This document shows positions 25,857 to 52,400 of a stretch of DNA of 64,000 nucleotides, one piece after another. The first letter of the stretch is position 1. The number at the start of each line of letters is the position of its first letter. A program made the position numbers and the translations under genes. Below the pieces are notes generated by a model. That model did not search any database. It was given only the letters and a program-made list of their open reading frames with translations, and had not been told where the DNA came from. Origin of the DNA: Entomortierella parvispora E1425 (lineage: Eukaryota > Fungi > Mortierellomycota); assembly GCA_020891255.1 (NCBI GenBank), contig BQFW01000007.1, forward strand, positions 744,001 through 808,000, read 5' to 3'.

Positions 25857-26783
25857 TCATGGAGCCCTTCGCTTGCTGCTTTCCGAGTCTTTTTTACTCG
25901 CCATCAATGTGGTATACACGTGGCCTCGGCATCCAGTCGCAGATCTGGTCCCTACTACGTGGCTAACCTCTTGCCAATCAACGGACTTCAGGTCCAGGCT
26001 TTCTATATCGATCGTTGCCCATGCCTCTTTCCATCTTCCTTTTCCGTTTCCATCGGCCTTAACATACTTTAGGTCGGGCACTTGGAGTCGGAGAGCCTTC
26101 ATAAGCAAGTTATCCTCCTTTGCGTTCCAGTGTCCTCTGCCAGGTGTGGCCATCGGGTTCACGGTATCCCACCGTCTCTGACAAGCCGTCGATGTCCTTC
26201 CGAGTCGTTTCCCATTCACCCATGTCGCTGACACCTTGCTCCAGTCAATGATATCGTCTGGCTTTCGTCCTTGGGATTCTGATGGCGAAGACTGTTGGTT
26301 TTGTTGCTGCTGGACCAATTGGATCAACATATCATCTTCGTCCTTTGTCCACGGCTGAACCCTCATCCACTTGCGCAAATACTTTGAATCGACTCCTGCC
26401 TGCCGATCCTTGGCCTCGATAGCTTTCCGCAGCATGTGCATTTGCTGTTCAATTGCATTCACAGATCGGAGCGGAAACTCCATATGAACGTCCCGCGACG
26501 TTAACCCCTCCCGGACCTTGGATTCCAGAATAGCGATATCACTCTTGAGCCAAGGAATCGGAGATTCCTTGTGGGTTCTGCTGTCGTTGGTAGTGGCGAT
26601 GTTATCTTTAGGGTGGTCGGTACTGGTACCGATGGTCGTGGTCGAGAACGGCTTGAAGATTCCTGACACAAAACGAGGAGTCCATCGCGTGTTTTCCAAA
26701 AATGGCGCCGCTGATGGAGTAAGGCGGATGAGGCGGCAATGGGAGAGGATCCCGCGAGACACCCTGTTGGTTATGGTTGACAT
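25857..26783 (-). CDS. Myb/SANT-repeat protein A (3 repeats) with mitochondrial-presequence-like N-terminus
   Basis: Repeats PWLKSDIAIL, PWTKDEDDML..DWSKVS..GRTSTACQRRW and HWNAKEDNLL..DWQEVSHVVGTRSATGCR. N-terminus is R/S/T/L-rich and nearly acid-free. Confidence 0.8.
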   Translation of the reverse strand: MSTITNRVSRGILSHCRLIRLTPSAAPFLENTRWTPRFVSGIFKPFSTTTIGTSTDHPKDNIATTNDSRTHKESPIPWLKSDIAILESKVREGLTSRDVHMEFPLRSVNAIEQQMHMLRKAIEAKDRQAGVDSKYLRKWMRVQPWTKDEDDMLIQLVQQQQNQQSSPSESQGRKPDDIIDWSKVSATWVNGKRLGRTSTACQRRWDTVNPMATPGRGHWNAKEDNLLMKALRLQVPDLKYVKADGNGKGRWKEAWATIDIESLDLKSVDWQEVSHVVGTRSATGCRGHVYTTLMASKKDSESSKRRAP

Positions 26784-26985
26784 GAGGTCCTGATCTTCTA
26801 ATCTTGAATGTGCATGGAATTAAAACATCAGATCAATTGTCCAGATTACAATGATCAAGGCTACCCATGTAGCTCACGTGACTTCGAATGGGTTGGCCCA
26901 GTCACACAAGTCACTGCAGGCTGCAGTACAGACAACATTCTCGCTGCTGTATATGCCAACGTGAAGAAAAAAACACCAATATTCG

Positions 26986-28041
26986 TTATTTCGTTGATAT
27001 TGGCTTCTTTTGAAACTTCCCCTCCAACGCGTAGATTTTTTTCTTGACTTGGAATGCAGAACGCGTGCCAATAATATCTGCCAACTTATTCCAGTCCCGT
27101 CCGTCTTGTTCCATGCCCTTCTGAAGCATGTTCTCCTCTTCCAGCGTCCAACGGCCTTTTTTGCGCGTTAACAAATTGTTGTAGACATGACTCCGGCACT
27201 GATTGTCGGATCGGGATCCTACCACGCGACTGACTTCGTTCCAATCAACCGATCTCAGGTCTGGGCCACCATCCTCCTTTGTTGTCCCTGTTTCTTTTCG
27301 TCGCTTCTTTCCTTCTCTAACGGATTTCAAATCCTTCAGGGCAGGTACTTGGAGTCTCAGAGCCATCATCACCATTTTCTCTTCCTCTGCGCTCCAATAG
27401 CCTCCAGCTCGTATGTTCATCGGGTTCACGATATCCCACCGCCTCTTGCAGGTAATTGGGGTCCTCCCGAGCCTTCTACCATCCATCAAAGTTTCTGCCA
27501 CCAAGGTCCAGTCGATCCTATTGTCCAGTTCTCCTGGTTGCTGTTTTAATTGTAGAGATTGTTGCTCTTGTTGATGTTTAACCAATTGAATCAATATGTC
27601 GTCTTCAGCTTCTGTCCATCGCTTGACTCGGTGCCACCTCTGCAATTTTATGGAATCGACTCCTTCCTGCTGGTTCTGGGCCGCTATTTTTTTCCGAAGC
27701 CGGTGCATACGAGCCGACAATCCTTCCATGGTTCTGTGCGGAAAGTCCATATGGACGTCTGATGGGGTGAGCCCCTCCCGGATCTTGGATTCTAGTATTT
27801 CATTTTCTTTTTGGGACCAAGGAGATGGGCACGTCCTTCTGGTACTATTGCTGCGGCCGGTGGTGACGGTTTCATTTGTATGGTGGACAGCTGCGGCCGT
27901 GGTGAGCGACCTCAAGAGTCCAGAGACAAAACGAGGAGTCCATCGCGTGCTATCCAACAATGAGGTTGTCGCTGCAGTAATATGAATACGGTGGCATTGC
28001 GAGAGGATCCCAAGTGCTGTCCTGTTGGCCATGGTTGACAT
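26986..28041 (-). CDS. Myb/SANT-repeat protein B (4 repeats) with mitochondrial-presequence-like N-terminus; tandem paralog of A
   Basis: Repeats PWSQKENEIL, RWTEAEDDIL, YWSAEEEKMV and GRWTLEEENML..DWNKLADIIGTRSAFQVKKK. Start is homologous to copy A (MSTMANR vs MSTITNR; both contain TRWTPRFVSG). Confidence 0.82.
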   Translation of the reverse strand: MSTMANRTALGILSQCHRIHITAATTSLLDSTRWTPRFVSGLLRSLTTAAAVHHTNETVTTGRSNSTRRTCPSPWSQKENEILESKIREGLTPSDVHMDFPHRTMEGLSARMHRLRKKIAAQNQQEGVDSIKLQRWHRVKRWTEAEDDILIQLVKHQQEQQSLQLKQQPGELDNRIDWTLVAETLMDGRRLGRTPITCKRRWDIVNPMNIRAGGYWSAEEEKMVMMALRLQVPALKDLKSVREGKKRRKETGTTKEDGGPDLRSVDWNEVSRVVGSRSDNQCRSHVYNNLLTRKKGRWTLEEENMLQKGMEQDGRDWNKLADIIGTRSAFQVKKKIYALEGKFQKKPISTK

Positions 28042-28186
28042 GTGCTGATTTCCTGCCCTTGAATGATCTTCGTGAAGTGGAACAACTATGGTTCTCATGC
28101 GCAGGAAAGCTTTGTCCTTCGCGGTCACGTGCATGGATCCATGGTTTTCTAGGGTACTTTTTATTGCGGATATTTCTTGGACATTT

Positions 28187-29191
28187 CTAAAGTGCATACT
28201 CAATAGGGGTCTTGGGATCCAAGAACGCCAGCCAGTCGGAATGCGATGTGGGCAACAGGCCCATAGCATTCAACTTCCACATGCCCAACAGAATAGTCAA
28301 GATCTGCATCGCCACATATGTCAACTTTGGCAAGGCCAGTTTGCTGTCCATGAACGCGACCTTGACGGGGGACACCGTCTCGTATCTCTCAAAGACTAAA
28401 ACACGCGAGATAATATCAGTAAACAAACGCCCAAGAATTCATATCATTTCTATGATGAACATCAAAAAGACTGGTCTTACCCTGAGACATATTCATCAGC
28501 GCACGAATAGGCGAGAACATGAGCATGGCTGTGATGGCGACTGAGAAGATCTGGACGGTGTTTCCACTCATCCACAACATGAATCCCTGCATAGGCAACT
28601 GTTTTCCAGGTGCAAGAGCAACATCCCATGCTTTCTAAAACGGGGAAAAGAAACCGCAATGATTTTTTCGTCAGTTCTCCATGGTTTGCATCCAAAAAAA
28701 AACAAGATCCCGATCAGTGATGCGTTGTTGGTATTCTCTTTTTTCGAGTGCTCATTATAATCCAGTTCTGTACCTTGACTTTCAACAACTCGTTATCCAC
28801 TTTTGGCTTGGCTCCTTTCTATATACATTTTGGTTGAGGAACAACGCGTTAGTGGACAAAAAATGGACCCTTCATCTTTTCTCGATCGGAGCTTTTCAGT
28901 AGTGATGGTACATACGTGTCCCTTGGAGGCAATATCCTTGGGTCCGACATATCCTGGTGGGTCTACGACGGGGCGCCTGTTTGTTCAATTAGAAGTAAAG
29001 ACGGTAAGTTCAACGGAACAGGGCATGCAGAGCCGCCTTTTGCTTTCTCTCATCTGGCAAGATGAAAACCATCGTGTCCAGGTCGTCTTTCTTTCGTTCA
29101 TTGTGTTCCCTGAAGCAGCGCTTGGTTCGTACTTTGATGAGTCTGGGGTGGTAAAGTCGAACTTCCAGGGGCGGGTAGTTGCAGCGGACAT
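28187..29191 (-). CDS. EMC4: ER membrane protein complex subunit 4
   Basis: Spliced product [66 protein letters not shown]-type segment ([20 protein letters not shown]). Confidence 0.9.
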
Positions 29192-29491
29192 GGTTGCTGT
29201 CGTGTAATGTGCGTTGTTGATGGGAGGTGGGTTCCTGAGAAAGAGTCTGCCCCGCCAGTCTCGAAACGTAGCATCCAGATGATGGCACGTTCATTCATTC
29301 ATTCATCCACTTTGCACGTGACCCATCTGACCTTTGGTGACTGCCTCCCTCCCTCCAATTCAAAGCAATTTCGCCTTGCTTCGTTCCCTCCCGAGGCCCA
29401 CCAGCACTGATCGTCTCTCCTCATTCGCTCCTCCTTGCTCGCTGCATCCCTCTTTCCTTCCTTCCTTTCTTCTCTCAACCACGAACCAGAC

Positions 29492-30748
<1,257 letters not shown>

Positions 30749-49462: not shown

Positions 49463-52400
49463 TTACAAGATACCGTTCGAGTAGTACTGGAAGGTATCGT
49501 ACAATCTCGTAAACACATTACAACAACTGCTCATGATCAACTTCTCCACAAACTCCTCCGCCTGCACCTCTGTCAAGTTCAACGCCAATCGGTCCCTAAC
49601 AGCTTGAGCGGCCGCGTTCTCGGCCACGTTCTGGAAGCAGGGGAGCTTGGAGTCCTTGGACATCATGTCAATCAACAACACAATGTTCTCTGTATGTTTC
49701 CGGATCGCCATGAAAGCCTTCTTGAGCAACGCCTTGAACTCCATAAACTTTTCACTGTTTACGCCTCCCAATACATCAATGTATTCCTGGGGCAACTTGA
49801 ACGGTGCCAGCTCAAATCCAACCGAACCAGGAGAGTTGGACAACATGAATCCGAAATCAATGTGGACAATGTGACCTTCAGTGTCCAAGAGAATATTGCC
49901 GTTGTGACGATCGCGGATCTGGAGAACATAGGTGATCACAGAGTAGGCTGCCAGCGATCTCATGAAGTTGTCTTGCGCCTTGATAAACTTTTCACTGGCG
50001 GGATCGCCGAATTTCTATGAAGAAGCACCAATGTCAGCATCTAACACGCTCAATCCACAATTGTGACAACCTGGGGGGGGACTGCTATATCCATTACCTG
50101 TTGGAAATAGTCGTAAAGAGTGAACACGACGCCGACCTCATTCAATCGGCGAGCATAGGCATCCTTTTTGATCGAATGAATCGAAATAGTGTTACGAACA
50201 GTCTCGATCAGTCCAGAGTTGTCGGATGTAACCAAAATACGCATGCTAGGGTAAAAGAAAGGGAAAGGTTGGGAGTCGGTTAGCATCATACGGATGCTGA
50301 TGAACAAAGGACAAAAGAGTTGAGAAGGTCTGCAACCCAAGTCTTACTAAGTAATCCAGACATCAATCTTGGCGCGCTCCCAAATCCAGCCCATCTCACG
50401 AATCAATTGGCAAGCCAGCTGCTCCTGTCGAAGATCTGCTCCTTGCTTGACAATGACCGAAAGCAACTGCCAGGAAGGCAAATGTCCGTAAGGAGATGAT
50501 TCCCTGATACGCTGCATCTTCTCCTCCCATCCTTCAGAAAAGACAGCAGCTATATAAAATAAAGTAAAAAATAAGTCAATAAAACAAACATATTCGGCTC
50601 ATTACTTCTCTTGAATCCCTAGACTCGAAACATACCACTGGGGTCATCTGTGGCGACATTGGCCATGACCTTGCGCTCATCTTCCAACATTTCACTGCCG
50701 GCACCCTCGCCCCCACCTCCTCCAACACCGCTGCTGACACCCTCCACCTTCATTCTCTGCATCCTCTGTTCTTCCAAGGCCATCATTTCCTTGATAATTT
50801 TGGCACGGATATCTTCCACAGAGGTTGCCTTGGCCTTGATTGCAGACCGCGATTGGGCGCTGGAACGAGAATTGTTGTTGGCACCTGGAGCCAGTTGTGC
50901 AGCCTGCTGTTGATTCAACTGGGCCAACATGACAGCAGCCGTTCTCATCTTCTCTGCGAAATCATCCGCGCTGTTGGACGCACGGCGCTTCAACACTGTC
51001 TGGAGGTACGCTTCGTTCGAACGTGACTGGGTCTGAGGCTGACGAGATCCTGTTCCAGATGATGTTGAAGGGGCAGGGCTCTTCAGGCGGCTGGTGGGGT
51101 CCATGGCAATGACAGGACTTGTCGGTACAGGCGATCCAGGTGGTGAAATAGTCAAATCTGCCAAAGATCCTGCTGGTGGATTGGGAACCTCATCGGCTCG
51201 AGACTTCTCTGTCGAGGTGGTAGAAGCGGCATCGTCGACCGTCTCTAATGTGGCCATGCCCTTGATAGTCTCCGCATCATCCTCCACCAAGAGGGTCTCT
51301 ACCTGAATGGAACCATCCTCGTTCATCAACAACTCTGTAGTTTGAACTGCTGACTCGTCTTCCTGATCATCCTCCTCAGGCTCTGCAAGATCTCTTCGTT
51401 GAGCGCGAATCTCTTCTACACTCATGTCAGTCTCCAAAACCTCAACTTGCAACAAATATGGGACCTAGAAGGCAACAACGAAATAACACATTGTTAATTA
51501 CAACTGACAGAGATATGTACCGATCATATAAAATATAAAAGACACCAAAACTCAAAATAAAACTTACGCGATCTGCAGAGTTCAAGACAACGGCATCTTG
51601 CGGTGGTATACGGACAACACGGTGGTGAGACGGGTTCTCCAAGGTAGCATGACACCACAGGGGCACACAAATCTCTGCGGGTAAGTTATGGTTCAACAGC
51701 GTAAGCTCAGCGCGGAGGGCACTCAAGCGAGCAGGTTTGGGCACGATCACCAGTCGGGTCGCAATGTCGACCAACGCCAAAAGGAACTGCATCTCCGAGT
51801 GAAAGTAGGAGCGTCTAGCCAACTCCAAGGATGCCGCAGATGACCGTCCGTCCATTGAATCCCGATCGGAGAACTTTAAGCTGATAGGAGATGATGGTGC
51901 AGTGTCGTTGCTATACCGAGGAGAGGCGAATCGATCGCGCTTCAACTTGAAGGCCTGTCCTCCTCGAAGATCCTCCAAAGAAGGCGAAGTCACCACGTGG
52001 TTTCTCTGAATCGAGTTGACAGTGTTCGTGTTCATTCCAGACAATGTCGCGTGGGGCGAGCCTGGCTCTCCCGATGGAGATCGAGGCGAGGTGGCGCCAT
52101 CCGTCTCCTGTCTCGGCTGTCCCATTGCAGGCGTGGACCGGCCACTCTCCTCAGGGGTCACATGGTTTGTGCCATTATGCTGATGTGGTGTTTGCAAATG
52201 TTGTTGTTGCTGTTGCGATGCTGCCTCTCCAGTAACCTCCTCTGCATTTTCCACGCTTGTGCTATATGCGCGAGGGCGACGGCCCTGAGCCAATGCCAAC
52301 TGTCCAGGAGATTTCGTCATCAAAGGCTGTCCAAATGCAGCCAACATGACGCCCATGCCCACCATAGCCGACAGCGCGTTCTCCTTGACTTTGGGAACTC

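Follow-up and report, generated by a model that had tools for sequence, protein, structure and literature searches.

Tandem Myb-repeat genes with presequence-like leaders in Entomortierella parvispora encode candidate mitochondrial nucleic-acid-binding proteins

Myb repeats are textbook nuclear modules. In c-Myb (R1R2R3), Reb1, TTF-I and Nsi1, all of them nuclear proteins, tandem three-helix Myb repeats read double-stranded DNA, and Reb1-type proteins halt transcription and replication at defined sites. SNAPC4 (PDB 7xur, 7zwc and 9fso), which is also nuclear, exceeds 1400 amino acids and contains an array of 4.5 Myb repeats (Rh-Ra-Rb-Rc-Rd), one of which carries a long helical insertion, together with regions that bind other SNAPc subunits. 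The mTERF, OPR and PPR proteins (among the last, the restorer-like ones of plants, whose genes are clustered) are nuclear-encoded helical-repeat proteins with a presequence, and they feature lineage-specific expansion, frequent tandem arrays and rapid turnover; to our knowledge, the lineage-expanding organellar expression factors of these and similar kinds are all built from helical repeats other than Myb. Here we describe two adjacent genes, A and B, from Entomortierella parvispora E1425 that combine a SNAPC4-like Myb array with an N-terminal leader resembling a mitochondrial presequence. They lie in a 64,000-nucleotide stretch of contig BQFW01000007.1 (744,001–808,000), referred to as the window, and coordinates are window positions 1–64,000 unless another contig is named.

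Genes A and B are both on the minus strand and are arranged head to tail. Gene A (25857–26783, stop included) encodes a protein of 308 amino acids containing the leader and three Myb repeats, the fourth repeat being lost, and an identical 308-residue product is present in NCBI. Gene B (26986–28041, stop included) encodes 351 amino acids with the leader and four Myb repeats; its start is Met77 within a 427-residue open frame. The two open reading frames (ORFs) are uninterrupted and colinear with those of their homologues. The Pfam families Myb_DNA-binding and Myb_DNA-bind_6 (PF00249 and PF13921) match A with 38.1 bits and B with 78 bits, the curated cut-off being 24.4, and the two proteins are 48% identical across 298 residues (E 9e-100). 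The original prediction, made from the DNA letters alone, had described two intronless tandem Myb paralogs with three to four repeats and long variable insertions. The continuous frames, the Pfam matches and the level of identity bear this out, as do the four repeats in the AlphaFold2 model of B (see below) and the absence of the fourth from A.

The leaders of A (residues 1–47; 26643–26783, minus strand) and B (residues 1–47; 27901–28041, minus strand) belong to N-terminal stretches of about 50–70 residues that are acid-poor, basic and rich in serine, threonine and leucine. Both proteins begin with MST..NR and share the ten-residue motif TRWTPRFVSG at residues 31–40, behind which A continues with KPFSTTT and B with RSLTTAA. 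The sole acidic residue among the first 40 is at position 30 and the second appears at position 56–57, which agrees with the nearly acid-free, R/S/T/L-rich start of about 50 residues, sharing TRWTPRFVSG, that had been proposed. The A leader ends in KPFST, an R-3-like site; the corresponding motifs around residue 44 are RSLTT in B and RPFTT in P0001, a metagenomic orthologue. AlphaFold2 places helices at residues 2–18 and 23–31 of B with low confidence. As a separate observation, the shared motif includes RWTP, with which Myb repeats usually open (26681–26692 and 27939–27950), and it may be speculated that the leader is the remnant of a degenerate Myb repeat.

The first 40 residues of 12 family copies from this genome were compared with those of 36 control ORFs, each 200 amino acids or longer, taken from the window and from the other loci analysed. 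The family copies have a median of 0.5 acidic residues (controls, 4) and a median net charge of +4 (controls, 0), and their second acidic residue is reached at a median position of 68 (controls, 24.5). A simple leader criterion, of at most one acidic residue and a net charge of at least +3 within the first 40 residues, was passed by 10 of the 12 family copies and by 2 of the 36 controls. Beyond the leader, the family proteins contain 12–14% acidic residues. The gene for Coq5, a standard matrix protein, is located only 1.4 kb away (29489–30748, plus strand) and served as a positive control: it encodes a leader of like composition that ends in APFSTST. Its identity is given by UbiE/COQ5 motifs in the later exons, and its syntenic counterpart matches Pfam Ubie_methyltran. 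The negative control was provided by canonical nuclear-type Myb genes from this genome, whose N-termini are acidic or consist of repeat sequence and which do not bear such leaders. One of the two controls that passed the criterion is a 307-residue ORF at 51445–52365 (minus strand), which has no Pfam match and shows a presequence-like start with a RAY-STS site.

A leader of this type is widespread in the family. When 1.84 billion representative proteins were scanned with the family profile, 150 matched below 1e-30, and the colinear matches that were checked by name (20 out of 20) are all from Mortierellaceae, namely Mortierella, Podila, Linnemannia, Gryganskiella, Dissophora, Lunasporangiospora, Lobosporangium, Haplosporangium and Entomortierella. 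Counting leader-bearing Myb genes, a check that accompanied the original prediction, gave 14 of 14 copies examined in this genome, whose leaders agree in composition and differ in sequence, and, across about ten genera of Mortierellaceae, 40 of the 55 family members; leader-bearing relatives were also found in Mucorales. The latter were recovered with a profile of six leader-bearing multi-Myb proteins and come from Circinella, Phascolomyces, Zychaea, Phycomyces and Spinellus. Annotated as 'Homeodomain-like' or 'Myb-like protein A' (for example, Circinella minor INT45_010411), they resemble A and B in having SNAPC4-like Myb repeats after a leader, here of 25–55 acid-free, basic residues ahead of the first repeat. 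They differ in being longer (580–700 residues) and in having many more repeats, are matched by the A/B family profile repeat by repeat and not in colinear fashion, and are uncharacterised. The presence of leaders in both Mucorales and Mortierellaceae indicates that the leader property is older than the Mortierellaceae family. Judged from these sequences, the property is kept while the sequence itself changes, which is how targeting peptides behave.

The folded part of B was modelled with AlphaFold2 from the 55-sequence family alignment (mean predicted local distance difference test (pLDDT) score 79; predicted template-modelling score 0.66). The model contains four three-helix units, mostly with pLDDT above 90, at residues of about 73–125 (repeat 1; 27667–27825), 140–205 (repeat 2; 27427–27624), 214–290 (repeat 3; 27172–27402) and 296–345 (repeat 4; 27007–27156), all on the minus strand. 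The long insertions sit in repeats 2 and 3, repeats 2 and 4 are also detected by Pfam, and repeat 3 is colinear with the insertion-bearing repeat of SNAPC4. Residues 1–70 have pLDDT values below 60. In A, the family alignment places repeat 1 at residues 76–128 (26400–26558), repeat 2, with a Q-rich insertion and a Pfam match, at residues 143–208 (26160–26357), and repeat 3, with a long insertion, at residues 217–293 (25905–26135), likewise on the minus strand; the gene ends directly after repeat 3. The tryptophan columns are invariant or nearly so across the family alignments, and the predicted mature parts are basic (isoelectric point 8.5–9.9).

Among PDB entries, the family profile matches human SNAPC4 best (7xur_A, E 1.1e-28), and this match is colinear through the long insertion over about 150 profile positions. 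It is followed by c-Myb, Cef1/Cdc5 and CoREST, with Reb1 being weak (5eyb, E 1.5e-5 over 28 residues only). A Foldseek search with the B model also gave 7xur_A as the best match (E 7.8e-7), then c-Myb R1R2R3 and then Reb1 (template-modelling score 0.33). By sequence and by predicted structure, the folded part of A and B is closest to the SNAPC4 Myb array. In contrast to SNAPC4, A and B belong to a multi-copy family, carry an N-terminal leader and have colinear relatives that, as far as checked, are all Mortierellaceae. Orthology with SNAPC4 was rejected, given the short length of A and B (308–351 residues), their content of only a leader and three to four repeats, and the presence of at least 13 intact copies in this genome. 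Membership in the Reb1/TTF-I-type terminators was also considered; the sequence kinship is weak and A and B are without the accessory domains that Reb1 possesses. Neither Pfam nor the AlphaFold2 model revealed domains in A or B other than Myb repeats. No mTERF, PPR or OPR repeat motifs are present in the two proteins, for which Pfam gives Myb families alone; the folds are unrelated, and the parallel with these organellar families is one of analogy only. A Pfam search for mTERF in this genome gave no match, and the control genomes gave none either, so that absence is not demonstrated by it. An ESM Atlas feature search returned generic Myb clusters only, with every score below 0.8.

Taken as a whole, these sequence features make it probable that the leader of A and B is a cleavable matrix-targeting presequence and that the Myb array acts in mitochondria. 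A mitochondrial, or dual, localisation of the two proteins likewise appears reasonably likely. For import, cleavage, nucleic-acid target and role, we infer only the following scheme. A and B would be nuclear genes whose small, basic products, a leader joined to a SNAPC4-like array, bind nucleic acids sequence-specifically. The leader would direct import into the matrix and would be removed near residues 44–48, at R/K-x-F/L followed by S/T-T, and the mature Myb array would then act on mitochondrial DNA inside the organelle. Possible roles would be those of a promoter, terminator or pause-site factor, or of a DNA binder associated with mobile elements. By analogy, a stopping role similar to that of Reb1 would make sense in an organelle.

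Several observations weigh against a mitochondrial destination. The maximum of the hydrophobic moment (0.53 for leaders, 0.47 for controls) does not separate the two groups, and strict R-3-type motifs are only modestly enriched, being present in 14 of 40 leaders where shuffled sequences would give 7.5. About a quarter of the deposited family models are without a leader, and the control set is small, with 36 ORFs. The characterised relatives SNAPC4, c-Myb and Reb1 are all nuclear, and clusters resembling nuclear localisation signals (NLS) occur as KKRRK in B and as PKKRKPR in three array copies. The proposal of a mitochondria-targeted Myb family is accordingly borne out in part: presequence composition as in Coq5, breadth and purifying selection speak for it, the hydrophobic moment is not distinctive and the R-3 motif is only mildly enriched.

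These observations lend some force to the view that A and B are ordinary nuclear Myb factors, transcriptional or architectural, whose N-terminus is disordered and basic and has a different role, or directs them to both nucleus and mitochondria. The relatives with solved structures all bind DNA in the nucleus, small basic proteins may enter nuclei without a dedicated signal, and the amphipathicity of the leader is not distinctive. On the other hand, the leader property is family-wide, whereas the NLS-like clusters are scattered at positions that vary between copies and are missing from both A and P0001. No leader of this kind is encoded by the canonical nuclear Myb genes of E. parvispora, the repeats are accompanied by no activation or repression domain, and the leaders of A and B resemble the neighbouring Coq5 presequence. 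We therefore regard this explanation as a serious but less likely one, and a purely nuclear role of A and B as likewise less likely. If the leaders were not mitochondrial, the family would still be a lineage-specific set of minimal DNA binders of the Myb type that turn over fast and keep a conserved N-terminal region with some other role.

The first in-frame ATG of A is that of MST, with a stop codon 12 codons upstream, and the same holds for P0001, in which no in-frame ATG is found within 89 codons upstream. For B, the upstream ATG at 28269 that opens the 427-residue frame falls within the final coding exon of EMC4 (exon end at 28187) and is not conserved; this start was rejected. A conserved 21-nucleotide block, CATTCAAG..AG.A.ATCAG, is located 7 nucleotides upstream of the ATG of A (26790–26810, minus strand) and 4 nucleotides upstream of that of B (28045–28065, minus strand). 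In all three genes, P0001 included, it stands 4–7 nucleotides 5′ of the ATG, and it is absent elsewhere in the window and in the loci compared. The block was rejected as coding sequence, as most of its differences would be non-synonymous and A has the stop codon noted above. A CACGTG box is also common to the three genes about 85–100 nucleotides 5′ of the ATG, at 26875–26880 in A (about 90 nucleotides upstream) and at 28126–28131 in B (about 85 nucleotides upstream).

The leader shows a ratio of non-synonymous to synonymous substitution rates (dN/dS) of 0.5–0.65 among A, B and P0001 and of 0.13–0.7 in a tandem array of family genes on contig 15; by this measure it is under purifying selection. 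The idea that the presequence is conserved between otherwise diverged copies needs correction. Between A and B the leader is conserved no more strongly than the remainder, with 48% identity in the leader and 47% in the remainder; against the orthologue P0001 the leader reaches 60% and the remainder 46–49%. Synonymous divergence (dS) is two- to fourfold lower in the first 50 codons of both genes (26643–26783 and 27901–28041) than in the rest, at 0.35–0.57 versus 1.2–1.5 with the orthologue included, in a small sample; this hints at a nucleotide-level constraint running on from the conserved upstream block.

Transcription or translation might instead begin downstream at an internal methionine, leaving the leader out of the protein, as in the deposited model of the array paralogue P0004 of this genome (343 residues), which begins at an internal methionine with the leader cut off. 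This is very improbable for A and B. The dN/dS of the leader is below 1, the MST start is kept in A, B and the orthologue with the conserved block just upstream, the first internal methionine of A is residue 101, within repeat 1, and the NCBI models of A and of the array copy EMPS_11494 include the leader. Together these findings support the leader ATG as the true start and the leader as translated. When three 'leaderless' deposited models were checked on the DNA, two had an upstream in-frame methionine that opens a leader-like start and the third has introns. In the deposited models P0066 and P0031, from other Mortierellaceae, an internal methionine or a doubtful intron cuts off an in-frame leader.

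The last exon of EMC4 (28187–28426, minus strand) ends only 146 nucleotides upstream of the ATG of B, and Coq5 follows beyond it on the opposite strand. A metagenomic relative keeps the order Coq5-EMC4-Myb, and P0001 is a single gene flanked by EMC4 on one side and, on the other, by the orthologue of the downstream neighbour of A. In the tree, A, B and P0001 form one clade with 100% support. Because the relative carries one gene at the same place, A and B are best read from these sequences as the product of a tandem duplication specific to this lineage, with repeat 4 lost from A afterwards. Decay of A, or of both genes, into non-functional duplicates, as the missing fourth repeat of A and the broken family remnants elsewhere in the genome might suggest, is hardly credible given that both frames are open, A and B alike keep the conserved upstream element, and the three genes A, B and P0001 show an overall dN/dS of 0.31–0.42 in their comparisons, with synonymous sites near saturation, so that neither copy looks dead.

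Elsewhere in this genome the family has expanded further, as the original prediction of a duplicating family implied: besides the tandem pair, eight intact copies stand in tandem on contig 15 (C15:2602253–2615940). Including A and B, the genome contains at least 13 intact full-length copies, three more of which lie elsewhere on contig 15, together with a split candidate on contig 5 and several broken remnants; the contig-5 family member is leader-bearing too. The array copies are 49–84% identical to one another, with an outlying copy at about 30% to the others, and the seven close copies form a species-specific clade in the tree. The array genes (for example, EMPS_11494) belong to the same family as A and B and share the leader type; they differ in having one extra N-terminal repeat, being five-repeat genes, and in the sequence of the leader. 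Identity of A/B to the array genes and other Mortierellaceae family members is 22–26%, colinear, with profile E-values of 1e-64 to 1e-202. Within the array, identity is mosaic; copy J, for instance, matches K in the leader and E in the body. Leader types and bodies have recombined between neighbours, and the three copies with PKKRKPR have it just past the leader. The overall dN/dS in the array is 0.4–0.7. In two array pairs the third helix of repeat 4 reaches a value of about 1.95, which comes from small counts and for which positive selection is not claimed.

A second, unrelated-looking Myb family is represented by EMPS_02848 (562 residues; contig 4, about 847 kb), which contains at least four Myb-type stretches behind an acid-poor, basic leader. 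The leader is also present in its Mortierella alpina orthologues. The deposited EMPS_02848 and EMPS_11494 are 100% identical to the proteins from the respective loci of this genome.

In the literature covered, which excluded subscription journals and so cannot prove absence, no description of mitochondrial Myb-repeat proteins was found; on the literature side, this agrees with the proposal of an undescribed class. A mitochondrial proteome of Mortierella was likewise not found within the same coverage. It is conceivable, though we hold it only tentatively, that Mucoromycota (Mortierellales and Mucorales) possess an undescribed class of mitochondrial Myb-repeat proteins that bind nucleic acids sequence-specifically, expanded in Mortierellaceae by tandem duplication and segment exchange in the manner of plant restorer-like PPR and mTERF genes and perhaps tracking mobile introns or selfish mitochondrial DNA. 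Such a class would add a new protein architecture to the control of organelle genomes and would provide early-diverging fungi with candidate mitochondrial DNA regulators of their own. It would also offer a tractable system for the recruitment of nuclear DNA-binding modules to organelles, Mortierella alpina being transformable.

Contig 20 of the assembly is the mitochondrial genome. Its cox1 gene (C20:17691–23938) is present in at least four pieces within long open frames of 391–701 residues, which suggests intron-encoded ORFs.

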